A DNA stretch of 64,000 bases from Bugula neritina (Eukaryota; Animalia; Bryozoa): assembly GCA_964035545.1 (NCBI GenBank), contig OZ037772.1:7734889-7798888 (forward strand). Direction: 5' to 3'. The notes under the pieces were generated by a model. The model ran no database searches. It saw only the letters and a program-made list of their open reading frames with translations, and was not told the DNA's origin. This document shows positions 314 through 64,000 of the stretch, one piece after another. Each line of letters opens with the position of its first letter. The stretch's first letter is position 1. Both the position numbers and the translations under genes were made by a program.

Positions 314-3300
314 ATAGAGACCTTATTTGTACTTCATATAGTTGCTGAAGTGCAGATCAAAGAAAATGTAGCAGGGTAGGTTAGATTTACATATTACGGG
401 TTTTTTCTTTAGAGCAAATAGTTTATACTGTATTATAGTTTGCGTCAAGCAGCCAACTAAGCAACGCCCATTGATTTCATTCTCCGATTGTCTAAAAAAG
501 TTTAAACTTTCACAACATGTTGAGTGGACAAACTTGTTCAATTGAACTGGAACTTTATATAGTAAGTTTTGGTGAATTGCAAAACTATTCATTCAAATAA
601 TTTTTTGAGTTGATTAACTTAATTTATATTATAATAGTCATAGCGAAGAGAGATAAAGACTTCTTACAAATCCTGGCCTTAAGATTTATGAATTGCCTTC
701 TATAATGATTATTTGAAACTCTTCAGTGCAACTACCAGCAGTCAAATTTGAGTCATTTTTAAACGTGATGATGTGAATAGTTTTTTGATTTTTTAAAAAA
801 TGTAAATAACAAAAAAACCTAAAAGTCAAAACATTTTCTACTTATGTTAATAAAATCATCCTTGTTTTTAGATAGCATACATGCAGTTGCATAACAGCAT
901 ACTTGTCTGGTTTTAGTGTGAAGTTTCTGAAAGTTACGAAGAATGATCTAACCAAACCTCCAAAAGTTGATGAAGATGCAGAATATTTTCATTTTACCAG
1001 CTTGACTGAAGATAAGAATAACCAAGGTTCCTATTTTTTAGCCAGCCAACAAGTGATTCAAAGCACTCAAGACTTTATTAGTTTTACAGATGTTGCTGGC
1101 TCACCACGTTCTGATTGGTACCAGAGTGGTACAGATGCCATGTTTGGAGAAATTAATGGGATGGCGACCACAAAAAGTTTTTCATCTAGTGTTTTTGTAG
1201 CAGATAACACATATCATTGTATACGCGAGGTGGTGCTAGAAAGAACTGAAGGGGTGTTGACATATTTAGATAGAGAAATAGGAGGAATGTGTGAAACCAG
1301 TGGCTCCATTGACGGTGCTCGTGGGATTGCTCGGATTTCTAGTCCCTTTGACCTAATAGAGGATTCTCCAAAAAGACTTTTATTTTCAGAAAAAAGAAAA
1401 ATAAGAACTTTAACTTTTGAAAAAAATAATTGGATAGTTGGGACTATCAGACCATTGAGGGAAGACATCCACAGACTTGCCATTCATCCTAAATATAACA
1501 CTATATTGATGACAACCATCTCGAAGATATTGACTTATGAGAATGGTTACGTGAATGACCTTATAGGATCATCCAGTGGACACAAAGATGGGTTCTTTAT
1601 CAATGCACAATTTGACAATCCACAGCAGTTACTCTTTTTAGGTGAAAAAGTCCTTTTGATAGCTGATAAAAATAATCATGTGGTGCGGGTGATAGATCTC
1701 AACACATTAATTATTTCCACCATATGCAGTCCTAAACCACATTTAGCAGCTGAAGGTACATCCATTACGGACTGTCAAATGAGTCACCCTCACCTTTTGA
1801 TAAATGATAGACAAAAGAATTTGGTTTACATAATTGACTCAAAGGGGATCAAATTTCTAAGCTATAAAAGTATGTAACCAGCATATTGGTATTGCTTATT
1901 GCTATTGGTAGTAAAACACAACCATTTGCAAATGTGAAATACTTTTTCAGATTTTTACCTTGTTTGTGTCCGTGTGTGCTTTTGGACAATTTTCGAACAT
2001 ACACCTATATCATACTTTAATGTAAAATGTTGTGCATAGGTTATGTATGTATCCTACATCAATATAACCTCACAATTTCCTTTGCAGCTGAAAGCTCAAC
2101 TGGTAGCAAATCTCCTACTGCCACCAGCATCACTACCACCAGTACCAATAAACACCCTGTTAATTCAAAATTAAACTATTGGATCATTGTACCCAGTTTG
2201 TCAACTATGATATTGATGATTATGTTAGTTGCAATATGCACTGTGGTAACTGTGTGTCGAAGAAATAGAAGATTGAAGAGTGAGTATACAAAATAAATAT
2301 AATATACTTAGGAGACTGGAAACAACACTTTATAATCAAAATTATAACAAAAAATATGCTGCATACAAACAAACAACAATTTATTTCAATTTTATCCTTG
2401 CTGATTTAGAACAAATTTATAAGTTATTGCAGAGCTCACAATTTATGCTGAATTTTCAATACATTATTTCTGACTAATACACAGTTCAATTGGCATCATG
2501 AATCAAATGTATTATACTTTAGAAGAAAAACAGGCTGAAACGAAGAAAGGAGTTGAAACTTCATCAAATTCTAAGGCTGATGAAAAAGTATGTAATATTA
2601 CTATTAAAAATTGTTCATTGTTTGATCAGTATATAAAGTACCTCAAAATTTTAGTTTAAATCGTAATAAACAATATACATTCTTTTCACCATTTGGAAAA
2701 CCAACTCAATCAGGCTTCAAAGGAAAAGCAAGTTGAAGTCATAAAAGAAGGACCCAAGTCACGGGACATTCTAGCTTCACAATCTAAGACAAGCAACAAT
2801 GTGTGTATTTATTATTATAGACTTTGTGTTGCGGAATCAGTAGAACTTCTTGCTTTTAAAAACTCTTTTTACAGTTTTCAAATATTTATTCCTTTTTGGT
2901 TTCTTACAACCGACCAGTGTTTTGGCTAACTAGCGTTTAATAGAAGAATTTGGGGTAAAATAACTATGTTTTATTCTTGGCATAGACGCAACCGTAATAT
3001 TATCTGTAATTTTCTTTAATGATGTTAACCTTTATAACGATGCTTTACTGAAGTATTATTGAATTTTTTTTAATTCTTTGCTTTTTGATTTTGTGTAGCT
3101 GATTTTTATGACAACAGTTTTTTTGAATTTATGCAATTGTAGCAGATTAAATCTGTTGAGAACCAACAGCTAGTTTTAGATAATTCATTTAATGCTGCTT
3201 CAAAAGAACAACAAGTTGAAGCGGTGAAAGAAACCATCAAATCATCCAATATCTTATCTTCAGAGTCCAAGACAGACAGAAAAGTATGTAATAAATAATT

Positions 3301-6300
3301 AAGCACTTCATTTTGTCTAAGCAGAAAAGCTTTGTTGCTTCAAAAACATAACTGTGTGTTTAAGAAAATTGTTTACATTATTTATAATTATTGGCTTTTA
3401 GTTTTTGCAACTAATCAATGAATTTTGTCAAACCAGCTCTTAGTATGGAACAATTCAAAGTAAAAATCCTAAGTCTTGTTCTTGGCTTGAATGCAATTGT
3501 AGGCTTACCCGTTCTCCTAATAAAATGCATATAAATATTTTAGCACTACTAAAATGTTATTGAATTTTTTTTAAATTCTTCTTTCTTGGATTTTGTTTAG
3601 CTGCATTTTTGGAAATATGTTGGTTAGTTTTTTTTTGGATTTATGCAATTGTAGCAGGTGAGGTCTGTTGAGAACCGACAACCAGTTTTAGAGAATCCAT
3701 TTAATGCTACTTCCAATGAAGAACAAGTTGAAGCGGTGAAAGATACAGTCAAATCATCGAACATCCTAACTTCACAATCTAAGGCAGGCAACAAAGTATT
3801 TAACTAATAGATAGGCAAAGTTTAGTGTGGAGGCAGTAGAGCATTATCGCTTTTAAAAATGCATGGCTCACTGGCACAGTTTTATTTTTACAGCTCTTAT
3901 AGTAAATGCATTCTGGTTTTTGCAACTAACCAGTGTGCTTTCAAACTTATGTTTTGTAGCAAGCTCCAATGAATTTACCTAATTTTATTCTTGGCATAGA
4001 TGCAACCATAGGCTTATCTATTTCTCTAATGTTATAATCATAGATTTTAGCATTTATGGTGATCTGCTCTTCTAAAATGTTATTAAATGTTTTAATACTT
4101 TTCCTTTCTTGAAGTTGTTTAGTTGCGTGTTTCATACTTTGTTGCACAAAGTATGTTGTAACGTTAATGCAATTATAGCAGGTTAGGTCGGTTGAGAACC
4201 AACAATCAGTTTCAAAGAATCCATTTATGACTGCTTCAAATGAAGAACAAGCTGAACTCATCAAAGAAACAGCCAAATCATCAGACACCTCAACTTCAAA
4301 ATCTAGGATGGCCAGCAAAGTACTAACATATATTGTTCTGTACTTTACATCATCATAGCATGCAGTAGATAAAATACTTCAATTTGTGCAAAAATATGAA
4401 TATTAGAAAACAGGCAGTTTTTCATTCTATGCAATTTTTTTAAAAATCAAGACATGATTCTGATCTTCACCACAAAGGTTTTGTAGCTCTGTAACTCTGT
4501 AACTCATTTATTTTACAACTTTATCAAAAAATGAATTTGAGTTTTTGATCATTTTTGAAAATAGACAGCCAGTTTCATTTTTGGTTTAAAGGCAACTGTA
4601 GCTTTACCCATGAATATTAGAAAACATGCATTTTTTCATTCTATGCAATTTTTTTTAAACATCAAGTCAGGAATTCGATTTTCACAACAAAGGTTTTGTA
4701 GCTCTGTAGCTCTGTAACTTTGTAACTCAGTTAGTTTACAACTTTATAAAAAAATGAACTTGAGTTTTTGATAATTTTTGAAATTGAACAGCAAGTTTCA
4801 TTTTTGGGTTAAAGGCAACTGTAGATTTACCCATTCTTCTAAACAACTAGAATATGAATTCTAGTACTTTTGATTATGCTGTACCAAAAAATTAAGTGCA
4901 TGTTATTGAAACCTCTCTTTACTGGATTTGCTTAGCTGCATTTTTTTTAATACTGTTGTACAAATTACATTTCGTACTTATTATAAAATTGTAACAGATT
5001 AGGTCTGTCGAGAACCAACAACCAGTTTCAAAGAATCTATTTATGACTGTTTCGAATGAAAAACAAGCTGAAGTCATCAAAGAAACAGCCAAATCATCAG
5101 ACACCTCAACTTCAAAATCTAGGATGGCCAGCAAAGTACTAACATATATTGTTCTGTACTTCACATCATCATAGCAGTAGATAAAATACTTCAATTTGTG
5201 CAAAATATGAATATTAGAAAACATGCATTTTTTTATTCTATGCAATTTTTTTTAAACATCAAGTCAGGAATTCGATTTTCACAACAAAGGTTTTGTAGCT
5301 CTGTAGCTCTGTAACTTTGTAACTCAGTTAGTTTACAACTTTATAAAAAAGTGAACTTGAGTTTTTGATAATTTTTGAAATTGAACAGCGAGTTTCATTC
5401 TTGGATTAAAGGCAACTGTAGATTTACCCATTTTTTAAACAACTAAAATATAAATTTTAGTACTTCTGATTATGTTGTACCAAAAAATTTAGTGCATGTT
5501 ATTGAACCCTCTTTTTACTGGATTTGCTCAGCTGTATTTATCGGAACTGTTGGTACAAATTACATTTTGTACTCTTAATACAATTGTAGCAGGTTGAGGG
5601 CCAACAACCAGTTTTGGCTAATCCATTTATTGCTGCTTCAAATGAAGAACAAGCTGAAGTCATGAAAGAAACTGTAAAATCATCAAATATCTTAGCTTCA
5701 GAGTCTAAGAGGGGTAGCGAAGTATGTAGTAAAAAGCACTTTGTTGAATCAGTAAAAGCATAAGCTTCAATTTATGTTAAGTTTTAAATAATGAAAAGAA
5801 ATGGGGGTTTTAATTTTAGTTTATCATTCTATAAGAACTTGCAATAAATTGAAATTATGATTCTTACATCTATACATCAAAAATTTTTAACTTTATATAT
5901 ATGCATCAGATATATCATTAAGCAGTAACGGTCGAGTAAACAATTTTGAAAAAAAAACAAACTCAAGTTGTTCATAATTATTGAAAATAGCTTACTGTTT
6001 AGTGCATTTGTTTTTAACATCTCTTATGCAGTTAAAAAGTTGTTGGTTTTTTTTAACATTTTGTATAATTAGAGCTTAAGAGTTACAATTTTCATTCTTG
6101 GCTTGAATGCAATTGTCAGTTACCCATTATCCTAAGCCAAGTTAGAATCTTTAGCACTTATATACTCATGCTTGGAAAGGTAAAGCATGTTACTGAAAGG
6201 TTTATTTACTGAATTTACGTAGCTTCTTTTTACCACTATAGTTTGTACAAATTATTTTGTTTTTATACAACTCTAACAGGTTAGATCTGTTGAAAAGATA

Positions 6301-7482
6301 CAATCAGTTTCAGAGAATCCAGTCAACGTCACTTCAAAAGACGTTGAAGATGACGTTGAAGCTGGGGAGACACCCAATTCCTCGGATATTTTGCCTTCAC
6401 TATCTAAGGCAAGTAGCAGTTATTAGGTATTAATAAACATTCTGCATTGCAGAAGCAGTGGATAAAGCCTGTCTATTTGCATAGACTTAATGTAACATTT
6501 TTCATGAAATTTTGTCATATAGTGAATTACTTGTTACTTGAATAGGGCAGAACAGAGCTCAATGAGAAGGATCTCACAGGCAATTAAACATTCTAAATTA
6601 TTTAAATGTTAATTGGTAGAAAGCTACAATTGTGAACTTTTTAACAAGTGATAACCAATAATTGTCTTTTCAACTGCGTACGACATATCTCACCTCTAAA
6701 ACTACTTCAAGTCATAGTAAACATCAATGGATATAAGTGCAAAGAAACAAGACTAATGAATTAAATAGTAGTTCACTAGCAAGGGGATAATAAAATAAGA
6801 GTCAGTTTGCACATGACATGCGGTTGGCCTTCAAAAAGCAAAAAAAAACAATTATACATAATTGATGAAATATGTATGTACAAAATTACTATGCATACTT
6901 TTTGAATATTTTATCAGGGTTTCTAGTTAAACTGCAGTAGGTAAGTTTTAAAGAATAGGCTAACCTGGGTTGAGGTTGAGGGCGTTAGGAACCTACGTAG
7001 TTGTCATATTGGTAAGCAAGCAAATTGTTGGGAGTACACAGCTGGCAACATTTTTGAGTTTTTTAAATTTTCATAGAAACACAGTTCACCAAATGTTTTG
7101 ACATTTTTATATTAAACACTGTTAGTTAGAACAAAAATTATTTTAAATGTAAACTTCCACAATATACTGGAACTTCAATAGCACCTACTTGTTTCATTAA
7201 GCATTTGGTAACAGCAGCTGTCTTTCCTGATTCTGTTTTAAACTGCTATTACATAACTAAGAGTATAGTACATCTACTATTTTGGTAATGCATAAAATGC
7301 AAGCATAAACACCTGTAGGACACTAGCTTTTATACATGTATGATAGGCGAACATATGTATGTTTGTGTGCATGTTCATGGTAATTGGTATAATTTTGTTT
7401 TATTTTTATTAAACTCATGGTTGAATTTGATCTTTTTTAGATTGATAGTTCATTTGAAGAAATAGAAGAAACTAAGGAGTGA
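314..7482 (+). CDS. Gene 1 (5'-partial): NHL-repeat beta-propeller type I membrane protein with a repeat-exon cytoplasmic tail
   Basis: Predicted exons: 314-375 (62 nt, IETLFVLHIVAEVQIKENVAG, homologous to exon 2 of the paralogs); 917-1869 (NHL exon with HCIR, GxCxxxGSIDG, GHKDG..AQFDNP, IADKNNHVVRVI, STIC); 2088-2279 (Thr stalk + TM WIIVPSLSTMILMIMLVAICTVVTVC-RRNRR); 2523-2587; 2714-2800; six repeat exons within 3146-6408; last exon 7441-7482 (IDSSFEEIEETKE*). All phases are compatible. Exon 1 probably lies upstream of the window. Confidence 0.8.
3146..6408 (+). repeat. Tandem array of six homologous phase 0-0 coding exons (129-138 nt) with duplicated flanking introns
   Basis: Exons 3146-3283, 3658-3795, 4182-4319, 4998-5135, 5593-5721 and 6280-6408, consensus about VRSVENQQPVxxNPFxxASNEEQxExxKETxKSSxxxxSxSK. 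All are open and flanked by AG/GT (the last has a GC donor). The introns are also homologous, e.g. 4612-4920 vs 5208-5520. Confidence 0.85.

Positions 7483-8786: not shown

Positions 8787-8790
<4 letters not shown>
8770..8790 (+). promoter_or_regulatory. 6-codon upstream ORF whose TGA overlaps the main ATG (ATGA); equivalents start at 12788, 19301, 24238 and 30995
   Basis: ATG ACC ATC GAG ACA ATA TGA overlaps ATG AGT. The same arrangement is seen in genes 3-6. Whether it lies in the mRNA is unknown. Confidence 0.5.
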
Positions 8791-10967
<2,177 letters not shown>

Positions 10968-11754
10968 TGAGTTTTGAGACGAATCAAGGAAAGATGTAAG
11001 TAGTAGATTAAGTCATTGCAACACATTTAGTAAAAATTGGCTCCGCAAGAACAATTTATAGAAAAGGAAATGAGAATGTCAGACAGGGTTACATTATTAG
11101 TAGCACACTGGCTCTCAAGCACGTGCTACTATACTATAGATTTTTTGGCAGCTTTAACTGTTTGATACTCATTCAATTTAGGTTTAATTCAAAGTTAAAT
11201 TTCAAATTAAGCAGTGAAGTTGCCAAAAATTAACAAGCCTAATAAAATTTTTCATATTCAGCTCTCCTTCTTACAAAATTGTCGCCAGTGATTTGTTCCG
11301 TTAGTTTTGTAGTTTCTTGTGTATCTCCAACTCTTTGTTTATTAAATATAGGGTTATTGTTTTTCGTAACATAAAGTTGATGTTCTAATGCGTGGGTTTT
11401 TGATAAAATATGTAATTTAGGCTAGTGATACTGGCAAAATGTTCCCAAACCCAACTAAGTGGTAAATCTTTGTTTTAATTCTTTTTTATTTATAATTTTT
11501 TTTCTTATTATCTAAATAGTTTGGATTTGCCACATGAGTATCAAATCACATGGTAAATTATATATTTAATGACATATTATCTTTGAAAACAATAGAATGC
11601 TATAAGTTTAATCAGAGTGACCTGATAGTCCGTTTTACTGCTCAGCTGCATGCGAGAACTCTTAGCAATAACTCTATGACTACTTGAAATTACCGTAGAC
11701 ATATATTTATATAACTGCAAGGAATTGTAATTCACATCTATCTAAAATAATTTT

Positions 11755-12804: not shown

Positions 12805-15311
<2,507 letters not shown>

Positions 15312-19317: not shown

Positions 19318-19368
19318 ATGAGTGGGTTGATCTTCATAGTAAGTAACCTGTTGCTGTGCGTATAGGTG

Positions 19369-19453
<85 letters not shown>

Positions 19454-19470
19454 GTATATATATTTATATT

Positions 19471-19565
<95 letters not shown>

Positions 19566-21005
19566 ATATATATATGTTTATATGTTTGCATTCTAGATTT
19601 TCGCCAAGCTATATCTTTGTGTGTCTGGTGAAGTGCTGTTTAAAGATCAAATCTCAGGGTATGACATTAGAAATGACATGTTATGACGTAGCTAATGTCC
19701 TGGATAGTCCCATTTAGTATACATTGCCATATGAAAAAAATTGCCTAATGCATCTATAGTAAATAAAAATTCCATTGTAAATTAAAAATAACGTGCTTAC
19801 GGAGTCATGCTGGTAAATCACTTAGCAGATTTCTTAGAAAATTCACTGTTTAAAACGACTTATTCACAATTAATTGCTACACTGTTTTCAGTTTAAAGAT
19901 TCTCAGCGTAACCCAAGTCAAACAATCTAACACTGAGCGTGAACGGGATTTTACCGCTGTAACAAAAGACAAACATCGTAGGGGTGTTTACTTGGTAAGC
20001 TACAATCGAGTGATCTATGAAACCAGAGACTTCAAGACTTTTAACTACATTGCTGGCACATACTTGCTAAATAGTTATGCTACGGGAGATTTACCTACAT
20101 TTGGTAGCGTCACTGGGTTGCTCACGCCTACTATGTATCCAGGAGTAATTTTAGTAGTAGACTGCATATTTCACTGCATTAGAAGACTGGTTTATGATGG
20201 TATAATATATCGAGATATGGAGTTTGCGGGAAGCTGCACAAAAAGAGGCTCTGTGGATGGTCCTGTTGACAGTGCAACACTGTCTGAACCAGTAGAATTA
20301 ATGGAAATATCTAAAAATGACATCCTTTTTGTAGAAAGACGTAAAATAAGACGTTTGTATTATGAAATAAACATTTGGCACGTAAAAACAGTAGAAGTGG
20401 TTGACCAAGACATAGTTGGAATGACTGCTCATCCTACAACTAACTCAATTTACATAGCATTCAAATCTAGTTTAGGAATCTTTGAAAATAATAAGCTAAG
20501 GTTACCAATAAAGAATCTGAGAACTGGACACAGTGATGGATATCTTTTTTATGCAAAAATCCAAAGTTTTAAGGATTTAGTTTTTGTGAATGACAAAGTT
20601 CTTTTATTGACTGACCAGAGCAACCACGTGCTGAGGATGGTGAACCTCGTCGATTATACCATTTTCACCATTTGCGCTGCTCCTCCATATAATCAACCTG
20701 AAAGCACATCTATTGCTCTGTGTAGATTGACATACCCGCGCCTTTTGCAAGTAGATGAGAGTGATAAAACAGTGTATATACTTGGAGCTGATGGTGTTAA
20801 CAAACTGAAATACAAAAGTAAGTAGCCAGAGAGACATTTGCTAAATTAAATAATATCTGTTATACTTCGTGAGCTGCTTCATTACCACTTATCATTAATG
20901 ATACCTTTACTATTACACACACATGCGCACGACTGTCTAATTATACACATGTTTTTATATGCAGTAAATAATATTACAATAATTATATACATATATATAT
21001 GTATA

Positions 21006-21081
<76 letters not shown>

Positions 21082-22260
21082 TTTTTTACTGGTTTATACA
21101 TATAAGGAATACTTTTTTTCCCAAGTACTCATATGTTTGTTATCAGCCTATATATCAGCCACTACTACTTTGGTATCGATGGCTTCCAGCATATCTCCAA
21201 GCACTGGGCTCTTCATAGCAAGCATCACGTTGATGTTGGTGTTGATCACTCAAGACGAATCAAGAAAATTAGTGAGTAACAAACTTACTCATTGCAGCAA
21301 ATTTGGTAAAAGTCACTATCAAAACAAATGTTATAGTTTAGTAGCATGATCAAAGTGATCATATTGTTTGTCTTCAAAGTCTCGTAAATGCTTGAATTAA
21401 TTTTTTTAAAATGGTTGTTAGTTGATTTGATAGTGATTTACAGGAAACTTTGATTTTTCAAATATTTTTATGATATTTGTAATTTCTAGTGTATCTCTAA
21501 CCGGTATTTTTTATATTTGCTACTCTTTTGACTAATATAAGTGCAAGGAAATGTGTCTCACATCTAATAAAAATACTAATTCAGTCTCAGTTTGCAACAT
21601 GGCATTGTGTCTGCTTTCAAACAGAAAAAAAAAAATTTTTTTTAGTTACTGAATTTAGGTAGGAAGATGCTTATATATTCATACCTTTTGCAATGTTTTC
21701 AACTGTGGTTTTACTTAAGATACAGTAAGTAAATTTTGAAGAATTTTTATTGCGCTAACAACTAGGTTCAGGGTGTTAATAATATCCATATATGTCACGT
21801 TGATAAGAAAATTAATTCTTGTAACTACACTGCAATTAGCAAGTCTTTGGTTTGGTAAAATATTAGGAGGAACACGTCGTAACATATGTTGTGATATTTG
21901 ATTAAACATTAATGTTGATGACAAAAAATGCTTTGTTTTTAAGTTACCACAATGTCTTGGCATTTCGATAAACATTTTTTAATATTGCATATATAGCTTG
22001 TTTCCTCAAGTATTTGCTAACTGCAGTTGGTTTTCCTAAATAAAATTTAAACTGCTGTTAGTGATTTAAATGCAAGCATAAACACCTGAACCCATGTCTT
22101 TATACCATAGCGATATCCAGACATAAATATGTGTGTTTGTTTGCATGCTTATGCTTGTGGCTATCAATATTTTTTATTTTATTTTTGATAAACATGTTGT
22201 TGAATTTGATCTTTTTAGAATGAAAATTTACTAGAAAAAATCGAAGAAGTTAAGGAGTGA
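19318..22260 (+). CDS. Gene 4: NHL-propeller protein with shortened stalk and a TM shortened by a frameshift
   Basis: Exons 19318-19338, 19597-19658, 19892-20817 (intact NHL; the ORF-track start at 19992 is internal), 21147-21271 (a net 16-nt deletion gives [21 protein letters not shown] and makes the donor phase 0), and predicted last exon 22219-22260 ([13 protein letters not shown], phase 0). Confidence 0.72.
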
Positions 22261-24260: not shown

Positions 24261-27320
<3,060 letters not shown>

Positions 27321-31011: not shown

Positions 31012-38946
<7,935 letters not shown>

Positions 38947-43289: not shown

Positions 43290-43339
<50 letters not shown>

Positions 43340-46022
43340 AGTCATTATTGAATATCCATTCCTAATATACAGTATACTTATTATTAGTCCAAATGACTGA
43401 AGAAACTGTAAGGCCAGCTGAGCCTATTACTAGACCTGCTACCCCGACTACCAAAGCAATTACCTCTACACCACAAACAACTGCTACCACTACTAAAAGT
43501 GTTGATGTTACTGGGACATCAGTTGAATCCCAAAACAAAGGAGTTATTGTAGCAAGTAGTATCATAGCAGTGCTAGCCTTGTTAGCTGTAGCATTTGTAT
43601 TCCTGAAGCATAAGAAGAAGCAAAGTAAGTAAGAAATAAGCTACCTGTTAAAAAATTATTGTGAAAGAAACAATATAATAAATTAGCAGCACTTGAATCA
43701 ATGTTTAAGAATCTATCAACATAATGTACCTAATTTCATAGATACAATAAAAAAAAAATCCATTTTTTTTAAGCACTAAGCAACGTTTTTCACACTTTTG
43801 AGTAGTTTCAAGAAGCATTTTCTACGAAAGTGTTTTGTAGTATCACATTGGTTTAATTTTATTCAGAAGCTCAGCAAGTGCAAGCTATGAACAAGGAGAT
43901 GAGACCATCAGATATGGTTACGATCGAGTGGCAAGCAGGCACTCATGTAGGTGTTTTAATATTGTTGCTTTACCTGCAATGTAGAAGTAGTAGATCTGTA
44001 TCTATGCTATGTATTGCCATATAAGAATAAATGCCATTACTAAGTAGCAAATACTTTTTTAAGTTAGCGAACAAATTAATTCACCAACCATGTTTTTTAA
44101 GACTAATAAACAACAGCATTTTTATGTTTAGTTAAAATATTCTTTTAAAGTTTTTAATTTGAAATAACTTGTTTGCTTTGCCATGTGTTCTTAGCAATTG
44201 CTTTGCTAAAAAATCTGATTTTAGATCGACGACTAATAACTTCATTATTTTTGTGTTAAAATTTATTTACATCTGCATGCATTAAATTCGAATAACAACA
44301 TTTTGTTGCTAGTTTTTGACTAATAGGCGTTAGCCTAAAGTACGTAATATGGATGCCAGCGGCGAGAGGTTGTTGCTAGTACTTATCCAGCAAACAACTC
44401 AACTCACCACCTCCTATATGAATGGAAAACTTTTGATGACCCTTAAGTATATAGATAGCACTCAAAAGTGTAGCTTAGTAAAGACAGAAAAAAAGCTATT
44501 AAATTTTTAGTGACTTTCATTCCTACATTCAACATGTTGAATTCATGTATAATGCCAAAGTATTTGCTACAGTTTTAGTTATCTTGTGAAATGTAAATGT
44601 TGCAGGAATCCAGAAACCCCGGCACTACACCAACAAAGAAGGTGCCAAGTAGGTTATTAATATATAATAAAACTTAAAAATGGAACTGCATACAACTTCA
44701 GTTTCGTAATTTAGAATGGGCCTGACTTTTGAATACTTCGGGAGCAATGTGTTTTATTAGCCAAACTTCAAAAGTTGATTACAAAACATTTAATTTTGAG
44801 TTATAGTCTATTGATCATTTTTAAAACGTTCTACTTGACTAAAATTATTATTATGAAGTGGTTATTTTATATTGTTATATTATGTGTTACTTGCAATCAT
44901 TTATGCAACGAACGTGCTATTTTAAGGTTGCATAATATGTCTTTAAAAACTGCGCTCAAAATCTAGATATGATTAAATTAAAAGTTTCTCAAGTCGTTCA
45001 ACATTTTTAAAATCCAGATCAAAAAAATTTGAGTTTTTTAATAAATTAGTTAGCTTATCTTGCAATAATATGAAAAAAAACTGAAAATGTTTGTAGATAG
45101 TGGCAGTTGCGAATAGTTAGTTAAATATTCTGATTACAAGCATAAAAGGAAACAGCAACTATACATGAGAACTTTAATTTTTAAAATCTATACAACTTTA
45201 TTTTTTCAGTTTGTGGGAAATAGCTAGTCATTTTATTAAGCATTGATTTCAAACACATGCATTTGATATGAAAGATTTTTAGTACAGTCATAAAAAGTGA
45301 AATTGACTAAAACTACATGTATTTTAATTATATGGATAAACACAACTTTTGCATTAGATAAGTTTTATCCCTTAATTTATAGCTATGAGTTTGTTTTTAT
45401 AGAATCTGGAAAGACAAAACAGAAAATTTCAGCTGCAAAACTCAACACTTCAAACAGGGTGAGTATTTACTAAGAGTTAAAAGATAAATACTTAGGTAGT
45501 TGCAATACAGGGCTTTCTTTTTAATTTGAAAAAGCTACTTTAGAATATACTTTACAGTTTTAAATCAGTTAGCAGCTTCATCTGTTCCTATAAAACAACT
45601 CTTGAAAGTTTAAAGTCACCATACCAGTGAGAAAACTCTATTGTAAAGAGTTTGTTCAAATCAGGCTAAGGGTTTACTCAGATGTGGCACATAAGCTATT
45701 ACGACTGGATTTTCTTCCCAGCATCACCGATGGCCTTTACCAAAGTTCAAGCTCATGACCCCTAGTTCAGAGCTGCTTATACTTTTGTTTATTTTGATTA
45801 TGGGTAAAAGAAATAACTGAGTAAATGAATCGTGATTACTGTTTTCTATTCCTGCTAACTTTTACATTTGTTATTCAGTATTCTTCTTCACCTCACGAGA
45901 GAGCAAAGCCCCCTCTTCCCGCTCCACCTCCTGATCCAGTGTATGCTACATTTCCTGTGGCAGGAGGAGAGATGCAGGTTGATGAATCAGGATTTTATGC
46001 AACTCTTGTCTCAAAGAAGTAA
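41093..46022 (+). CDS. Gene 7: NHL-propeller type I membrane receptor with a Pro-rich and tandem-tyrosine tail
   Basis: Exons 41093-41113, 41824-41885, 42190-43130 (NHL), 43388-43624 (stalk + [28 protein letters not shown]), 43867-43946, 44606-44648, 45403-45458 and 45879-46022 ([18 protein letters not shown]...[13 protein letters not shown]). Exon number and phases match gene 6. Confidence 0.88.
41174..41600. mobile_element. MITE family B in gene 7 intron 1
   Basis: ~31-bp imperfect TIRs: TATGTGTCAGTTTACTTCATTTAGTACACAC / GTGTGTACTAAATTAGGTAAAATGACCCATA. Confidence 0.7.
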
Positions 46023-50542: not shown

Positions 50543-53500
50543 CTACGAGATGAGATTGGAGGTGCTTAAACATGAAACTCTTTTTTTGCCGATCTTGGTT
50601 CTTTTTTTGGTTCTTCCTGATAAAACTGTCGACTTAATAGTAAAATCTGAAGCTGGCAACGATGCTGTAAAAAGGTGAAAAGAACTTATTTAGTTATATT
50701 TGATAATAAAAATAAAATAAGTAGATACTACATTTTGCACAAAAGAGCACCGCGTAACTCCCTGCCTGCATACTAGTTGTTTGGTAGTTCCTACTATTTG
50801 ACGGCCAAACATTCAAGAGTCTTCTGGTGCTATCATAATGTAATGACTTAAATATTTATATTTTTCAATAAAATAACCACATTTTTGATTCATTCAAAAA
50901 TTTGCTTCAAAAAGTGTTTTGAAAAAACTTGCTAATTTTATTTTGGAAATAGATGAAAATTGCAGCAGAGAATCTGATAAAACTACAGAAAATATTCAAT
51001 ATGTGCGCTTTTAACAACTTATGGCTATTTGTAAATATGGTTTGTTATTAAAATTTCAACTGTCTACATATTATAATACAGTATTATACCTCTATTATCT
51101 TTTTTTCTAGCTTCTGTTATTGATATTTTTTGATAGAAACATAGCTTATGTGGGATAGGTAAAAACAAGTTCCGTTACTTACTGAGGGAGTTGGTTTCAG
51201 AATCCTCATTTTTATTCAGCTTTTTCCTATATCGTATTTTCTTCCGTTTGATTTCACCACCTCTCTTTTCTACTTCTTTCTGCAATTGTCATAACAAGCT
51301 GACATATTAGGTATTGCTCTATTTAAAAGATATATTGGGTAATTTCTATTATCACAATTTGATTTGTGTCAAAAACAACTTCGGACCGTAAACTAATTCA
51401 ACATTCAATTTACACGTTTATTTAGGCTTCCAGAAACTGTCCTGAAAATATACCCTAAATTTTCTATTGTAAAAGAAAATGAGTTAAAATTTTGTTTATA
51501 CTAAAAAGGTTTATTTAATTAATATTTCAACCTTTTTCTTTGGCTTCTTTAGCTTTGATGAAGCTCGCCGTGTATGCACTGTATTTCCAGAAATCTCCCT
51601 TATTACGCTAGGTTTAGATGAATGATGTTTTCTTCTTGTAATGACAGCTAAATCTTTCTTTTTACCTAAAAATAAGCAGACGTCTCATAAATGATCATCT
51701 CACTCAGTTTTTATATCTATATATCAGTCTGTCTCTCTGTATGTGTGCCTGTGTGTCTGTCTGCATGTCTGTGTGTCTGTATGTCTGTCTGCATGTCTGT
51801 ATGTCTGTCTGCATGTCTGTATGTCTGTCTGCAGGTCTGTGTGTGTGTGTGTCTGTCTGTCTCTCTGTCTGTCCGTCTGTCTGTGTGTCTGTATGTATTT
51901 TTGTTTGTCTGTCTCTCTGTCCATTTGTGTGTGTATGTCTGTCTGTATGCCTCTCTGTCTGTATGTATGTATGTGTGTCTGTCCGTCTGTCCGTCTGTGT
52001 GTCGGTCTGTCTGTCTATTGGTTTGCATGTGTCAGACTGTTATTTTCTTATTTCACTGTCTCTCATTAAAAATATTATATCATTTAGAGCTGAGTTACGT
52101 ACCTGTGACTTGTTTTATAACTAGAACGGCGATCACGGCAAAAATGGCAGCGATGATGATAAACATGGAGAAGGTGATAGCAAACAACGTGTTTCCTGAT
52201 TGAGCCTCATTACTGTCTTTAGAGTTGTCTCCGTTCCTGTTAACAGGTGTCAACGGAATGACTGTCTCCACTGTTATTAGAAACAAATGATTCTAATATT
52301 ATGCGAAAAAATGAAATGTGATCTGATGTTAAATGATAAAAAGCACCTCACATTTTAAGTCAAAAGATCAAATTTGAACATACAAACTACATTTTCAAGT
52401 TGCCACACTGTAAGAGGTATTATACAGGAAAAATTATTGATTAACAGTGAATTTATTATAGACATTTCGAATACTATTTGCCTGATAGAATAAAAATTAA
52501 ATAAATCCTCCCGTCCAATCAGGCAAGTCATGATTGTGGAAGGTAAAAAGTAGAACAATAAATAAATGCCTATATGTTAGCAAGCTAGCTAATATTTTAT
52601 GAGAAAATTATAAAAAATAGTTTTGCAGTGTTGAATAAAGCTTCAGTGACTCAACTCAGAATTTTTTATCCAGTTTTTTTATTAACCACCAACACAGCTT
52701 TTCTTGTAAATGACTCTAAGGCTACATCAAAGTTTTAGACAGAATATCCAGTTATGCAATTGAGTAAATCATTGCTAGTAAAATTGATCATCAGGTCAAT
52801 ATAAATCAAAACTTTTAATCAAAACTATTATATTTTATCCGCATGTTGGTTTGGCTAAATTTCTTACCTATTTAAATAAATAATGTGTAAACGTGCATTG
52901 TAATTTTAATATAATCTGTAAAAAAAAAAGTAGTTACCTTTTCGAAACAAAAGAAGGGAGTAGCCTTCTTCTCCGAGAATGTATATAACTTGACTTCTTC
53001 TATTCAAAACAAGATTTTGAGGCCTTCGAAGTCTGCATGATGTAACAAAACCGGCCAAGACTATAATATTGTTCATTCCATGCTGTGGTGCACACACGCT
53101 AGAAATTGTGTTTTCTTGCACGTTAACTAGCCTAAGTATGTTGTTTCCTTTGTCAACTAATATAAAAAGAGACTCGTCAAGAAATAGCATTTCTCCTGGT
53201 TGACTCACACTACTACTAGATAGATTTCCATCCTTGTATCTAGTTGTGGAGTTTATCAAAGTTTTATCAGTGCCATATACATTAAGTACAGATACAGTGT
53301 TATCCTCATGAGTCATGTAAAAGTTCAATGAAGGGGGGTCTAACGCTAGACTATTGACAGGCTTGGTTCTGTGAAAGGAAGTAGTAATCTGCCATTCATT
53401 TTGAGTTTCTGACAAACTAATTTTTCGTATGCTAGGCATAGTGTTATCAAAAAATATAGCACTCTTATGATTATAAATTAGGTTGACAGGTGTTCCGATG

Positions 53501-54550
53501 AAAGCCTGTGCTACTGTCCCGTCCTTTACTTCATTGAATTGACATTTTCCTATTAGCTCTCTTGTCGTTTTTGTCTTTTGATTTATTTCTCTCAAACAGT
53601 TATTACTTTGATCTGTTACCCAAACTAGATCTGGGCTGTCAAGAGACGACATGACTCCTGAAATTTCACCAAATCTTGTAGCTACATCTGATCCCTCCAC
53701 GTATCCACTTTCTCTAAGGAGACCTGTTATCCGGTGAAACTGTTTAAATTTTTCTGTTGTGTAGACACCGTAACCAATGACAACAAAATATTTGTCTGAG
53801 TCACTTCTCCAATCCCTACCAGCGTATTTCAGAGTATAGTTTGAGAGTCTAGCATCTATATAGTGCTCATATCCATTCTGAACTTCAGTGAATATCCAAC
53901 TAAAAAAAGTATCACATTTGGGTCACAGTTTCTAAAGTCACAAATCTTGTTTGCTTAGAAAAACAAATTGTGTATAGTATTTTTTATGTACTTAAAACTA
54001 AATATTTCAAAGCTTACTTGTTTTCTTGATGGCCAGGTAGCTGAGCTGCGTTGTTTGAACCTATGAGCACTATGATGAAAATCTAAAAGAAAATAAATTG
54101 ATGCAAAATCAATTAATTATAGTACAAAGTTTGCCACTACCAATACTACTACTGGACTAACTATACTACTATAATTCTGTAGAATTGCTAACAATACTGC
54201 TACTGCTAGTACTGTTACTGCTACTACTAATAATACCTATACTACATATTATAGTGCTGCATATAACATGTATAGCTATAATGCTACAATCATTTCAGTG
54301 TATGAAATTATATGGCATAATATCAATTTATTTAGCATATTTCTAGTATCATATTTTAGTATTTGGTATATGTGTCTTAAAGGTATCTTTTTATTGCTAT
54401 AAAAAAAGTTTTTTGCTCGAAGTAACGCTTTTGAAAATAAAATATATAGTGAAAAGTCATGCAATATAGGCAGACTGGTTTTGACAGTATTGCCATTACG
54501 TAGCTAAAACTCTTTTTTTTTAAACTCACCACAATCTTCAGGCATATCAT
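50543..54550 (-). CDS. Gene 8: divergent NHL-propeller type I membrane protein with a Lys/Arg-rich tail
   Basis: Exons on the minus strand: 54550-54530 (MICLKIV), 54082-54018, 53899-52938 (NHL), 52270-52103 (short stalk + TM LFAITFSMFIIIAAIFAVIAVLVI), 51665-51532, 51279-51183 and 50664-50543. It shows the same 21-nt / 65-nt / phase 2-1 layout as the plus-strand genes. Confidence 0.85.
51725..52033. repeat. (TGTC)n/(TGTA)n compound microsatellite in a gene 8 intron (copy at 48292-48600)
   Basis: Directly visible. Confidence 0.92.
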
Positions 54551-55746: not shown

Positions 55747-58700
55747 TCAGTCTGCAAAAGAGTGTACTTCAGATTTTGAATCAGATGCTACAGGCAACTT
55801 TAACTCCAGGCTGTCTTTTTGCATAAAAATTCCATCTTTCAGTTTATTTATGTCAGCTGGTGTCAGAGAAGTTCTGGGATACTTGTGATCTTGAGATGTT
55901 CTTGTTTTGGACTTTTTGGAGCTTTTTTTATGGTTAGTTGTTTCTTTCTCAATGTTTTTCACTTTTTTACCCTTTGAACCGCTTTTCTTTTTGTGCACAT
56001 TGGTGTTAGAACTTTTCAAATCTGATTTTAATTTATATGATGAAGATAAATTTAAATATAGACCCTCTGCTTGCAATGAATTCTCACTTTTTGAAACAAT
56101 TTTTTCAGTTCCTTTTAGAGATTTTTTAGAATGTTCTTGCGGTATTTTTGTTGTTGAACTCTTGGACATTTTTACAAAGTTACGTAATTCGTTTTCAGCT
56201 TTTTTCACCTTTTTCTCTGTTGTAGTCCTAGACTTTATCCTTCTCCTTTCTAACAAAATCCCAAAGACAATTCAAACTTTATCTTAATATATGCATGCAT
56301 TGAATTTAAAAAATAAAAACTAGGTTGCTTTTACATAACCTTTTTTACATTGTATGTTTTCTAGCCTGAATACTTATAAAGTTGTTTGCTATTGCCTGAG
56401 GGTCAGTTAACTTGAGGGAACTTTTTTCAGAGCAACTAATTTGACAGACAGAAAACCTAAACAAACAATGTTAATTACGCTATATTATATAATACAAACA
56501 ATCAATAAATAAAACAAAGCATGTGCGTAGCAAATTTAAAGCTAGAAACATATGCTAGCTTCAGTATAGTAGGTAGGAGTTTCAACTTTTCACTTTTTTT
56601 AATTTCAAAATCAGTCTGCGAGCATGCTGAACAAAATTATTTTTTGCAAAAGTACTTGTCTATATCTACAGGTGACATAAAAATTGGTAAGCCTCAAGTT
56701 GTTGGAGTATAATGATATGCACTCCAAATAACAATTAGCAGCAATATAGTGCTGCTACTAGATTTATTTTGGATAGTTATAAAAAATGTATATGTGTTCA
56801 GTTATGGCTTAATTTAGGATTAAAGTTTAAAGCAACTTTATCAAAAATATATCTTACTTCTTTTCTTTTTGTATAGCAAAGCTAAGATCACCAGTAAAAC
56901 TGCTACTCCAAATCCCAGTGCGATGATTACAGTACCTAAAATTACATGAATTCCGGGAGAATTCTTTTTTGCTGGTTTGGTGATTGTTTTTGGAGAAGTC
57001 ACTCGAGGTTTCGAAGCTGTCGTTATTTGTGTCTTCGGTGTCTTTATTGAGGTCTTCAAAATTTTTGGTGAAACGATTTCCACATCAACTTTTTCTAGAA
57101 CAAATATTTTATATATGGTGCTTTGAGGTTGCCAATAAAAAATAACAAAGCAAATTCAAAAAATGTTTCAAAGCTTTTCCCTCTTACCCTTGCATGCTTA
57201 CTTTCATATAAAAGTTTATATATGTCATGATCAGCCATGATGTATAGGCCACTTCCATCTAAACTCTTGAGAATAGTTTTAGGTTGTGAAAGTTCACAAG
57301 ACTGAATTGAGCTTTGGATATCGCTCGATTTCTGGTTCATCTCTGACCCGCTACACATTGTTGATAGTGTTTGGCCTTTGTAATCCACCAGGTGAAGGAC
57401 ATTATTACCATAATCAGCAATCAGAATCCGGTCTTTGTTTAAAAAATACATATCTGTTGGACTATGAAGCTGAATTGTGTTGAACACTTTCAGTTGCTGA
57501 TCTGCATTCACAAGTAAGATTCCATTTCCATGTGCCACATAAAAGTCTCTTCTATAAAGGTCAAAGGCTAAACCAAATGCTTCAACACCAAGAGTATGTC
57601 GTGTAGAAACAATCCACAAATTCCCTCCTATCTCTAACTGGCGAATGGTTCTGTTTGTATTGTCATAGAATACAATTAGGCCAGGCTCATATTCAATTAG
57701 CTCTAAAGGCTTTCCTATAACTGCATCTACTATATCACCGTCAATAACTCCCACGACAGAACATTTACCGGCAATTTCACCTGAATAGCCCGTTAAAAGA
57801 TTAACATCCCGTATGCATCCATATGACTCGTCAGCAAGCCAGAAGGCGTTGGGATTACGTGCAGTGGTGAGAATCCCTGTGATGTTGCCAAACAGTGTCT
57901 CATCTGCATATCCTTTTACATACCCGCTTTGAAAAAATTTTCCTGTCACCGGAATAAAGTTTTCGAAATCTGCAGTAGTGAACAAAGCATACCCGTAGGC
58001 AACAATATATGCATTGGAGTTGTATGTGTCATATGTTATATATTTGAACCTGAGTTCAGAGTTACTTCTGTAAGAGTAATCCTTTGAAACACTTATCACC
58101 TTTGAGAAGTGATACGTGAAAGTAGTGTCTACAAGAAGAAAAATATTGAAAGAGTGAAATCCGATATTTACTTGAGTAAATAAGTTAGAAAAAGAACTAT
58201 AGTTTGAAGCATATGCCTAATCTTGAAGAAAACTAGATAGAGTTGCAACATTATTAAGAGTAAATCAGAACAACAGAAGTTATAAACAAGTGTAAATACA
58301 TTAAAACCATGTAAAGAGGTTAATTTTTTAGTTATCAGGGAAGTAAAATTATTGTTGAATGTATAGGTCTTCGTAACATAAACTAGAAGAAACCTTCCTT
58401 CTTTCTTGATAACATCAACTTACCAGTTAACTGCAGTAGGTAAACTGTACTATTTGTAAAAACATAGATGGACAAGTCATTTTTCATATAAAAGGCAGTT
58501 GGCTTTTTAATTCTGCACACATCTATGTCTCCAGCGAAAGTGTATATATTACCTCTCTGCGGTACACATATTGAAGAAATTGTGCTTTTAGCAATATTTA
58601 TTACTCGAATTACGCTATATCCTGTATCAGCTAAAAGAATCAAATTTTTGGTCAAGAAGATTATATTCTGAGGCTCAAATACAGCCGCTTGCTCCAATGT

Positions 58701-59500
58701 CCCATCATTGTGCCCTCCATTAGAGACTATTATCTCCTCTGGCTTTTGTGACCATGTACGATGCACTTTGAGTAATCCGGTATTTGTTGTGAGGTACATA
58801 TGCAAACCGTCAACATCAAACAAGATGCCGTTTGCCCTGACGTTAGATGTGTATACAGTATTCACACTCCATATGTCATTGATTATGCGCAAGGCTCTGA
58901 TTACCATGCGGTAATTTTCATGAAAGTAAACTTCAGTTGGGTTGGGAGATGTTGAAATTAGACCTATGGGCCAAGAGATCAGCGCATCACTAAACTTCTC
59001 ATCCGTGACATTGCAGGTCTGACATTGGCCGGCAAGTTCAGTGGTAATTTTAGTTTTGAGGTCAACTTCACGGATACAACAGTTGTTGTAATCTGCCACC
59101 CAAATGAAACTATTGTCTCGTGGTGATTCTATTATACCGGTTATCTTATTGAACCGAGCAAACTGCCCTTGATCTTCTAAGTATCCGTGCTCGACGTCGT
59201 TGCCAACAATCAACTCAAATGATTGCAGGTTGGTAGTTCTGTATATGCCCGACCCAGAAGCCACCAAATAAGCTCCAGCTACAAAACTGTCTTCAACCAT
59301 TAGTGAGATTGACTTGTCAGTTAGTTTTATCATTTTGTCAAATCTCAAGCTACAACGAATTGTTGAAGAGAGTTTTTAATACAGATTTTCACAAAAACAT
59401 GTCATAATGTGTAGTTATAATTGCTATAATTTACTAATGCAAGTTATTATTTTAGTGACCTACAACATGTTAATGAATTGCGCAAATATATATATATATG

Positions 59501-59532
<32 letters not shown>

Positions 59533-59638
59533 TACGTGCAAATGTGTGTGTGTATAAAAAAAAACTAACTCACTTGTTGTAAACTTTCTCATGGTCATGA
59601 ATTGCTACTCCACAAGCGCTTTGCAGCATAGCTAAAAC
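55747..59638 (-). CDS. Gene 9: double NHL-propeller type I membrane protein with a Lys/Ser-rich tail (first exon not resolved)
   Basis: Exons on the minus strand: 59638-59574 (65-nt signal exon), 59349-58424 (NHL-A), 58128-57202 (NHL-B, phase 1-1), 57094-56858 (T/K/P stalk + TM IHVILGTVIIALGFGVAVLLVILALLY-KKKR) and 56249-55747 (basic tail). No signal or TM exon lies between the two NHL exons. Confidence 0.8.
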
Positions 59639-61177: not shown

Positions 61178-64000
61178 TTATTTCTTACTCTTTTTGTGCT
61201 TCTTTTTCTTTTTTTTCTTTTTACCTTTAAAGTTTGCACAAAACCAAGGTTAACTATATGAGCATTCGTCATATACTTTCAAGCAGTTTAATATATGACT
61301 TGTTGGGGAGATAATAATAAATTGTTTGTGCTTCAACAACATACTTATAGGTTTACTTTAGCATCTCTTCACAGATTTGAGATCTGCCTAATTTCTCTTT
61401 ATATAAAATTTAGGAGAAGGAAAGAGCAATAAATTTGGAATACTTTTATAAAAAAAGAAACATAAATTACTTTTTGAGTTAGTTGTAGAAGCTCTGCTTG
61501 ATCCCTCGGAATATATGGCACTGGGTGACTCATCCGGTTTCTTGGAGCGGGAGTTGCTCCCTAATAGCAAACACAAAGCATAGCTTTAGACATGTGGTAC
61601 GAAAGATGAATTTTGAGTCGCAAAACTTTTAATAATAACTACAGTTTGCGTTTGCTATAATCTCTCATGATTATACCTCTGCTGGACAAAGTACCGAGTT
61701 TAGATTAATAATGCTTGTCCGGGTACCCCTTTATAGTGAAACTGAAACTCGTTGAAATCATATTGATGCGGTTGCTCACTTTTTAAAATTGAGATTTGAC
61801 TTCTATAATAGCTATTTGATGCCCTTTGTAAATGTCGTGAATTAGTGAAGTGGACAGCATAAAAGTGATAATTGAGAAGGCGTAGGCTATATAATTATAG
61901 CCATATAAGTACGCTGTCTAATCTCCAAAGTAATAACTAAATAACATTGTTCACAGGGAGTTATTACTCCTATTCTGAACACCGTCAATTAAGTTATCAC
62001 AGCACAAAAATGTTTACATGTGGCTTTTACAATGCAATGAAACTTGGAAAAATTTCAACCAGGTCAAATTGAATTTCTGATCAAAAATCATGAAGGTATA
62101 AAGGCAGCTTTATTGCTTATAATCTCTATGGCTACAGTCTTTATATTGCTACAGTTATTGATAACCGAATAACATTTGAAAATAGTTAAGCTCCAATCCT
62201 GTAGATCATTATCATAAGCTCGAAAGAACAATCAGTTTCATATTGCATAGGGTATAGTATAATTTTAAAAATAAATCTAAACAATATTTTGACTACTAGC
62301 CTAATTAAATTGAATGTTCAATAAAAAGACTGGTACATGTCAACAATAATCATTTTTGTTGAGAAATTTTTTGTTAACATTTTTTATGTAGGGTAGAGGG
62401 GGGTGTAAAGTAATAAATAGGAAAGCAGTTGAAAACGGTCTGTGACATCAGTTCTGCAATTTTAATAACTGAATTTCATGTATTATGTTCGAAAATTGCA
62501 CAATTATGTTAAAGAATAAAGCCAACTTACGTGATGTTTCATTTCTACTGCCACCACCGTGCTCACGACCGTGTCTTTGCATCTGATTATCTATAAATAA
62601 GTCATTATTTTTAGGCAATTGTATGCAATAGAAATATTTCCGTAAATCGTATGTTAAATATGCTTTGCGTTTCAGCCATATTATCTAAAATTTGTTTATA
62701 TATACATACACACGGACATATATTGTGCGTGTGCGTGTGTGTGTGTGTGCGTGTGTGCGTGTGCGTGTGCGTGTGTGCGTGTGTGCGTGTGTGCGTGTGT
62801 GCGTGTGTGCGTGTGTGCGCGTGTGCGCGTGTGCGCGTGTACGCGTGTGCGCGTGTGCGTGTGTGCGTGTGTGTGTGTGTTCAACTCACCCTCTTTTAAA
62901 AAGTTCTTCCTTCCAAGATAAACTAATGCAACCAGTACTATCAGTCCAGCCACAGCTCCTCCTCCAATCCCAATATATTTGATTAAACTATTTGGAGCAG
63001 CTTGCTCCAATGCGCTCTGGGATATATTTTGCGATACATCTACAAGAAAAGCATCTATTCTATCTGAACCCATTTTGCTATATATGATCACACAAGCATT
63101 TACGATGCTTATTTTATGAATTTTGTCTGTAATGCCTAATTAAGCACAAACTGTCAATAATAATATTATTATGTACTATCTTTAAATAATTAGCAGTCAA
63201 AAGTACATTAGTCATTCAATAACATTTTTTCAAATTTTAATTACAATGTTTCTAAAGTTTAGTAAAATTATTTGATCAATAAAATTTCTAACAGCGGTAA
63301 ATACAATTTTACTGGTTTCAGTGACTGTGAAAGAGATGTTGAAATAGAGAGAGTTTGGTAGGGTTATATGATAGCCAACCACAATCGTACCCTGATTGGA
63401 GGAATTTCCAGTAATCCCAGTTTCTTTCGTCAAGGTTACTGGAGCATTGCTTGTACTTGAAGTTTTATCTGAACAAATCAACAGAAAATTGTCCATTGAC
63501 TAATTTAAAGTGCAGCTGGTGATGATAACAGATAAAAATTTTAAGCAATTTGTATTTGTTTTCACTTTTTAGCTTAATCTGTTTGCATACAAACATTTCC
63601 AGCCGTTGTGAATATAATTTCGGTTCACCATCACAAATGCATAGCAGGCCATGCTTGGTGAGTAAATAGGGCTGTGTTTTCAAGCAAAATCAAAAATTTT
63701 AGTAGAAAAAATAGCTACAACAAGAACTCACCAAAATATTCCAAGCTGTAAATTTCAGAGTCCCCTAAAATGTATAACGTTGACGATTCATCTAATAGAA
63801 AGACCTGGTTAGGAAATCGTATTTTACAGTCTTTGGTGTCTCCTTCCATAACAGACACCTCACCTGTCTGTGGTTGACAAATAGTTGAGACTTCTGAGGT
63901 CAAAAGGTCAACCACTCTTATCACATGATTTGAATTGTCAGCTAACAGTAAGTTGTTCTCATCAAAGAAATAAAGACCAAGTGGCTTTCTAACCAGTGCA
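61178..64000 (-). CDS. Gene 10 (5'-partial): NHL-propeller membrane protein with a poly-Lys C-terminus
   Basis: Exons on the minus strand: >64000-63732 (end of NHL: [18 protein letters not shown]), 63468-63391, 63039-62890 ([23 protein letters not shown]), 62590-62531, 61560-61471 (contains SAIYSE), and a tentative last exon 61224-61178 ([14 protein letters not shown]). Confidence 0.72.
61671..62101. mobile_element. Dispersed ~430-bp repeat family C (short TIR TTATACCT/AGGTATAA); other copies at 1-231 and ~15777-16229
   Basis: 61871-62101 aligns with 1-231 and 15979-16229. 61671-61870 aligns with 15777-15978. Confidence 0.72.

Follow-up and report, generated by a model that had tools for sequence, protein, structure and literature searches.

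The window analysed here, 64,000 nt of contig OZ037772.1 (C8:7734889-7798888 of a 216-Mb assembly, GCA_964035545.1), is a slice of a large, old, tandem array of about 60 genes in a bugulid bryozoan, whose predicted products display an NHL-type beta-propeller at the cell surface. The NHL-propeller family that makes up this array is real, intact, lineage-restricted and multigene. We found no name or description for it in the databases and papers searched, as a preliminary description of the window made from the sequence alone had supposed, and it is thus an undescribed bryozoan array of predicted surface receptors built on an unusual fold. On balance, we are inclined to regard the array as a germline repertoire of surface proteins with many fixed specificities, which would act as ligand-binding receptors or as adhesion molecules.

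The window is AT-rich animal DNA (GC 27-35%). A tblastn search of its long open reading frames (ORFs) against the window itself returned ten full-length copies of a propeller domain of ~310 residues, seven on the + strand (genes 1-7) and three on the - strand, and an eleventh copy at 63727-63999 (-) that is cut by the window end. The ten complete propeller exons, which the preliminary description had reported as open, indeed contain no stop codon. They are 926-962 nt long, are entered in phase 2 and left in phase 1, and have canonical borders, with a polypyrimidine-AG acceptor and a GTAAGT-type donor. We then searched the whole assembly in six frames with a family profile (E<=1e-10), which yields lower bounds. 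At least 98 matches were obtained genome-wide, and 97 of 98 lack an internal stop, which places the propeller family far beyond chance. At least 59 strong matches lie at C8:7.583-8.026 Mb, within 443 kb of this 13-Mb contig and typically 4-7 kb apart; 58 of these propeller exons are open. Six further strong matches are found at C8:8.71-8.73 Mb, 0.7 Mb from the array, and one on contig C3, while a distant cluster of the same superfamily is located on contig C2 at 24.67-24.85 Mb (E about 1e-20).

The earlier count of at least 10 receptor genes holds for the propellers, and the array is far larger than that, but the window contains nine genes, one of them with two propellers, and part of a tenth. 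Propeller 9 has no signal-peptide exon, and its own exon is entered in phase 1 rather than phase 2. The exon of propeller 10, 295 nt upstream of it, is left in phase 1, so that the two propellers join in frame, with no stalk or transmembrane (TM) exon between them and one after propeller 9. A Bugula neritina contig (L062, 81% nucleotide identity) is likewise colinear with the pair for 3.1 kb, and the GenBank protein KAF6021169.1 joins the orthologs of both propellers. The missing signal-peptide exon, the in-frame phase-1 join and the colinearity of the pair indicate a single gene for propellers 9 and 10, predicted here from its exon structure, in place of two separate paralogs. It occupies 56858..59638 (-), with signal-peptide exon 2 at 59638-59574, propeller A (propeller 10) at 59349-58424, propeller B (propeller 9) at 58128-57202, introns of 295 nt (A-B) and 107 nt (B-stalk), and a single exon for the stalk, the TM helix and a KKKRSK sequence at 57094-56858 (-).

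The ectodomain can be confidently modelled as a six-bladed NHL beta-propeller. An AlphaFold2 model of the gene 2 propeller, computed from an alignment of the ten paralogs, has a predicted local distance difference test score (pLDDT) of 88.5 and a predicted TM-score (pTM) of 0.88, and its 24 strands form six blades of four strands each, blade 6 being closed by the N-terminal strand. In Foldseek, SOQ1 and NHLRC2 rank first with their NHL domains (E about 1e-11, TM-score up to 0.76), followed by TRIM71/Lin41, a teneurin-like protein and teneurins (6vhh, 6ske, 7ban; TM-score 0.66-0.70), and the top 50 are mostly NHL and other beta-propellers. The family profile likewise retrieved NHLRC2 (6.3e-15) and SOQ1 (9e-14) from PDB, and more distant database matches carry PF01436 and PF25021. 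The NHL-like nature of the propeller first proposed from the sequence is thus borne out by the model, by Foldseek and by the family profile.

We aligned 64 paralogs, consisting of the ten of the window and 54 further propeller exons of the assembly. Four cysteines are invariant (C95, C115, C261 and C277 in gene 2 numbering), and each pair connects a strand with the long D-to-A loop that comes after it. Two disulfides may thus pin these loops, which would fit an extracellular domain. The median number of N-glycosylation sequons is two per propeller. Apart from the cysteines, the positions that hardly vary are occupied by Gly, Pro, Trp and Tyr and by the Asp and Arg of the blades in the NHL motif; no conserved catalytic constellation and no invariant His were seen in the alignment. 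In an exhaustive protein search, single-domain relatives scored 200-480 bits and the best unrelated single-domain NHL protein 89 bits. These relatives are short genomic ORFs, and those that we sampled came from Bugula neritina, as run sequences or as hypothetical proteins; the sole named relatives are Bugula neritina hypothetical proteins. The look-alikes in the ESM Atlas are only generic bacterial NHL "cell surface" clusters.

The closest known domains differ from the array proteins in their context. The NHL domains of NHLRC2 and SOQ1 (6g7w, 6gc1, 7djk) are the best match in both sequence and fold, being six-bladed with a G..DG....A....P-type repeat, but they come after a thioredoxin-like domain in proteins that are single-copy and cytosolic or lumenal, share only about 16% identity with the array propellers, and have neither the signal-peptide, stalk and TM layout nor the gene array. 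The NHL domain of teneurins (PF25021) is, like ours, an extracellular propeller of an animal surface protein, with a role in partner recognition. Teneurins, encoded by one to four genes, are giant proteins of type-II topology that also contain EGF, YD-shell and Tox-GHH regions, whereas the array proteins present a lone propeller on a stalk in type-I orientation, with signal-peptide exons before it and the stalk and TM exon directly after it. To our knowledge, extracellular NHL propellers on animal cell surfaces are otherwise known mainly from teneurins.

The family is predicted to encode secretory-pathway, type-I membrane proteins with a propeller ectodomain. The arrangement outlined in the preliminary description (signal peptide, single-exon propeller, mucin-like stalk and TM exon) was recovered with canonical splice sites and with a signal peptide whose coding sequence a (TA)n intron divides into two small exons. 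A hydrophobicity-based exon finder was uninformative, and the signal-peptide exons were found by aligning the upstream regions of genes 2-6. Exon 1 comprises about 14 codons from the ATG and was found for genes 2-6; exon 2 measures 62-65 nt, ends in phase 2, and was found for genes 1-7 and propeller 10. Their joined translation has the hydrophobic character of a signal peptide. We looked for signal-peptide exons of gene 8 and did not find them. Long (TA)n microsatellites occupy the intron that splits the signal peptide at the same relative position in several paralogs (8850-9060, 12880-13190, 19400-19560).

The exon that follows the propeller is phase 1/phase 1 and encodes a Ser/Thr/Pro-rich stalk, presumably O-glycosylated given its composition, a TM helix and a polybasic stop-transfer sequence. 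The intron before it often has a (CA)n run; such (CA/GT)n runs lie after the propeller exon at the same relative position in several paralogs (10374-10715, 43125-43345 and others). A complete stalk and TM exon is present in genes 1, 3, 5, 6, 7 and 8 and after propeller 9. The family illustrates shuffling, in which phase-compatible single-exon domains are mixed with stalk, anchor and tail exons, and this would hold even if its function were ordinary adhesion.

Beyond the anchor, the divergent tail classes that had been described are present: a repeated cassette in gene 1, a double-tyrosine module in genes 6 and 7, and polybasic stop-transfer sequences, in addition to the damaged anchors of genes 2 and 4. 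The double-tyrosine module, YA[ST]F-x14-YA[ST]L, is conserved in the terminal exons of genes 6 and 7 and occurs in five places of the array, namely these two genes, two genes beyond the window, and a duplicated last exon of gene 7. We compared it with the immunoreceptor tyrosine-based activation motif (ITAM, Yxx[IL]-x6-9-Yxx[LI]) and inhibition motif (ITIM, [ILVS]xYxx[IVL]) as defined in PMC9546547. It fails the canonical ITAM, as its first motif ends in Phe and its spacer has 14 residues, and it fails the canonical ITIM, as the residues at position -2 are S, G, P and G and S is found at -2 in one motif only, which ends in Phe. Asp, Glu, Lys and Arg are all missing from the TM helices of genes 1, 3, 5, 6, 7, 8 and 9, so that these lack the charged TM residue of activating paired receptors. 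The likeness to paired receptors drawn in the preliminary description therefore stands for the tandem type-I array with variable ectodomains, but not for the signalling parts. All four tyrosine motifs of genes 6 and 7 fit YxxPhi, the AP-2 sorting motif, and because of this endocytic uptake appears as likely as signalling through Src homology 2 (SH2) domains for these tails.

The paralogs are old and, judged from their substitution patterns, individually conserved under moderate purifying selection. The median pairwise identity of the 64 copies is 28.5%, synonymous divergence is saturated between most of them, and few recent duplicates appear in the paralog tree, whose terminal branches are long. 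By Nei-Gojobori counts, the ratio of nonsynonymous to synonymous divergence (dN/dS) is 0.3-0.4 among close paralogs and 0.56-0.69 for gene 6, is never above 1, and amounts to 0.36 in strands and 0.6-0.66 in loops. We found no gene-wide positive selection, with no pair or 50-codon window clearly above 1; the highest windows, at about 0.9-1.0, are those of gene 6 against genes 2-5 in residues 151-200. Gene 6 itself looks to be of mosaic ancestry, because dN and dS are both raised in its residues 51-150 (dS 0.64-0.95). Against Bugula neritina-type contigs, ortholog dN/dS is 0.19-0.20 at a dS of 0.33-0.60 (gene 5 and propellers 9 and 10). Sequence entropy is higher in loops than in strands, and there is no hypervariable propeller face among the 64 paralogs, the top loops (B-C, D-A) having a value of 2.65 and the bottom loops (A-B, C-D) 2.71 (p=0.38).

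DNA identity between the window and the Bugula neritina-type contigs L062 and L063 is 81-83%, the latter being a metagenome contig with the ortholog of gene 5 (82.5% nucleotide identity). This level of identity, together with the synonymous divergence given above, indicates that the genome of the window belongs to a different species or a deep cryptic lineage relative to the sequenced B. neritina.

For polymorphism, we compared contigs of one sequencing run (X1) with the assembly over 53401-59400. The kind of this run is unrecorded, and it was taken as DNA since 75% of the window's words are present in it, introns included. The propeller 9 exon has 4 differences in 512 positions, and the propeller 10 exon 3 in 572 over a first stretch and 10 in 364 over a second, while non-coding or tail stretches differ by 0-2.4%. 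In this sample of one individual and two exons, we thus saw no sign of hyperpolymorphism (exons 0.5-2.7%).

These results agree best with the repertoire of receptors or adhesion molecules that we favour. The propeller would serve as a non-enzymatic binding module, because only structural NHL residues are conserved and every surface loop differs between paralogs, and each specificity would be kept by purifying selection, as the ortholog dN/dS of about 0.2 suggests. The YA[ST]F-x14-YA[ST]L tails may link binding to signalling through tyrosines or to uptake of the AP-2 type (YxxPhi), and members with broken anchors may be released or GPI-held (glycosylphosphatidylinositol) forms. Candidate ligands include microbial or glycan structures, neighbouring cells, gametes and settlement cues; Bugula has a vertically transmitted bacterial symbiont. 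Several points weigh against this interpretation. The receptor or adhesion role is a prediction, as are the disulfides, glycosylation and topology, which were read from the sequence. Single propellers score 11-14 bits with Pfam PF01436, below its cut-off of 20, and three of seven have no match, because the family is too divergent for this 28-residue model. The database relatives are all genomic single-exon ORFs that read into introns, none of them spliced; the selection tests are pairwise counts on few genes and not site models; and no RNA run with the window sequence was found among the sequencing runs searched.

This last point, along with the damaged anchors of genes 2 and 4, could be taken to mean that the array is largely unexpressed duplicated DNA whose open frames do not reflect function. 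We consider this very improbable, as 97 of 98 exons of ~930 nt have remained free of stops despite the saturated synonymous divergence between most copies, dN/dS between species is 0.2, and splice sites and phases are conserved. Equally improbable to us is an enzymatic role for the propellers, whether secreted or membrane-bound, of the NHL/SGL/PAL type, such as that of a lyase or lactonase, where PAL stands for peptidyl-alpha-hydroxyglycine alpha-amidating lyase. Some six-bladed NHL-like propellers are catalytic, virginiamycin B lyase is among the weaker fold matches, and distant sequence matches bear names such as "sugar lactone lactonase YvrE", but the 64 paralogs share no metal-binding or catalytic set of His, Asp or Glu beyond the structural blade Asp and Arg. 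Moreover, the family profile matches no PAL or lactonase chain in PDB at E<=0.01. A PAL-like or other enzyme origin was rejected, with no PAL in the Foldseek top 50 or the profile search and no invariant His. A cell-adhesion code, in which paralog-specific pairs of propellers on apposed membranes hold or sort the tissues of the colony, is closer to the reading that we prefer, and we rate it as possible although rather doubtful. Teneurins and the trypanosomatid proteins FLA1/FLA1BP would be its models. FLA1/FLA1BP and GP72 have the matching architecture of a signal peptide, a glycosylated extracellular NHL domain, one TM helix and a short tail, and they adhere membrane to membrane via their NHL domains (PMC10675206). 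They are protist proteins in few copies, without a mucin stalk exon or tyrosine module, and are compared with the array by the shared NHL fold only. The old, individually conserved paralogs and the one gene with two propellers would suit such a code. Binding of propeller to propeller is hypothetical, about 60 paralogs are many for a body plan with few tissue types, and anchorless members fit poorly.

We consider it unlikely that the array is an allorecognition or mating-compatibility complex, in which polymorphic self-markers bind homophilically where colonies meet or where sperm meet maternal tissue, with the tyrosine tails triggering fusion or rejection. The idea is attractive in a colonial host, in a phylum for which no allorecognition genes, whether for colony fusion, kin recognition or spermcast mate choice, are named in the papers searched; the B. 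neritina genome paper reported only weak similarities to Alr1. The layout also resembles that of the allorecognition complex (ARC) of Hydractinia, with 41 Alr type-I TM genes of which some have ITAM or ITIM tails, and teneurin NHL domains are among the fold matches. Both the Alr complex and KIR/LILR are tandem type-I TM arrays with variable ectodomains, divergent tails, some tyrosine motifs and truncated members (PMC9546547). Unlike the array in the tests made, they have an immunoglobulin (Ig) fold, canonical ITAM or ITIM, and extreme polymorphism. The low ortholog dN/dS, propeller 9 and 10 exons that differ from run X1 no more than their flanks do, the absence of a hypervariable face, one-to-one orthologs in kept gene order in a species with 81% identical DNA, and the failure of the tyrosine module to match ITAM or ITIM all argue against it, although this counter-evidence is weak, coming from three of about 60 genes and one individual. 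The self/non-self or immune recognition put forward in the preliminary description is a possible role that gained no support from the tests of dN/dS, faces and polymorphism. That description had named low polymorphism with uniform purifying selection as an outcome that would refute recognition; our sample leans that way and is too small to refute it. A more specific version, to which we give slightly less credence again, is that the ~60-gene array (C8:7.58-8.03 Mb) might be the histocompatibility or spermcast-mate recognition complex of bryozoans, with few highly polymorphic determinants hidden among conserved paralogs, as Alr1/Alr2 are within the Hydractinia ARC. It would then be the first allorecognition system on a beta-propeller rather than an Ig-like fold.

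Tandem arrays of surface receptors are a recurrent answer of animals to recognition problems, found here in an under-studied colonial phylum and with an NHL propeller. The well-known arrays of this kind use Ig, leucine-rich repeat (LRR), lectin or cadherin folds. As a defined and compact candidate locus, the array makes questions of bryozoan recognition testable.

The individual gene models are as follows. Gene 1 (314..6411, +) has its signal-peptide exon 2 at 314-375, beginning exactly at the exon start predicted earlier, a propeller at 917-1869, a stalk and TM exon at 2088-2279, and a repeat region at 2715-6411 of about six serial ~600-bp units, each with an open cassette of ~30 codons (SNEEQAEV.KET.KSS-like). 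Gene 2 (8787..10970, +) has signal-peptide exons at 8787-8825 and 9068-9129 with a (TA)n intron between, and a propeller at 9419-10344 followed by a (CA)n intron. Its Thr-rich stalk exon, from 10795 (+), is interrupted near 10965 by two stop codons, midway through the TM helix, and the product is predicted to be anchorless, or possibly GPI-signal-like. In gene 3 (12805..15005, +), signal-peptide exons at 12805-12846 and 13202-13263 precede a propeller at 13529-14454 and a stalk with a complete TM helix at 14772-15005. Gene 4 (19318..21275, +) is similar in its signal-peptide exons (19318-19359 and 19597-19658) and propeller (19892-20817), and a frameshift in the TM helix that follows its short stalk exon (from 21147) leaves about 15 hydrophobic residues. 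Gene 5 (24261..26550, +) comprises signal-peptide exons at 24261-24296 and 24776-24837, a propeller at 25112-26037, and a stalk and TM exon at 26350-26550.

Gene 6 (31012..38946, +) extends from signal-peptide exons at 31012-31044 and 31726-31787 through a propeller at 32329-33254 and a poly-Thr stalk and TM exon at 36789-37022 to the terminal exon with the double-tyrosine module at 38803-38943 (+). The intron between its propeller and stalk contains fragments of a Penelope-like retroelement as an inverted pair (34054-35124 against 36749-35684, 94% identical). A 360-aa ORF of this element (34542-35624, -) matches reverse transcriptase below threshold (27.4 bits, cut-off 29.6), and its C-terminal motif we take to be GIY-YIG-like, by recognition and not by a profile comparison.

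For gene 7 (41824..46022, +), we located signal-peptide exon 2 at 41824-41885, a propeller at 42190-43130, a stalk and TM exon at 43388-43624, and a terminal exon that combines a Pro-rich stretch with the double-tyrosine module and ends at 46022 (+); a second copy of this exon lies at 49257-49454. Gene 8 (52094..53899, -) has its propeller at 53899-52938 and its stalk and TM exon at about 52272-52094, with a second copy of the latter at about 48839-48661. Where genes 7 and 8 converge, there is a 3.4-kb direct tandem duplication (45775-49210 and 49207-52643, 99.86% identical), which doubles the last, tyrosine-module exon of gene 7 and the TM exon of gene 8, and which is either very recent or an assembly artefact. 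Each duplication unit contains a weak look-alike of signal-peptide exon 2 (TRIVLCMGDVKIIEDQCS), at 46613-46666 and 50046-50099, with no propeller exon behind it, and this may be an exon relic. The gene of the eleventh propeller is represented by its 3' part (62699..64000, -), with the propeller end at 63999-63727 running past the window, a stalk at 63499-63233 and the TM helix within 63139-62699. Finally, a dispersed repeat of ~240 bp is present in intergenic parts of the array, where 1-244 is 70-86% identical to 61871-62114 and 15981-16233.

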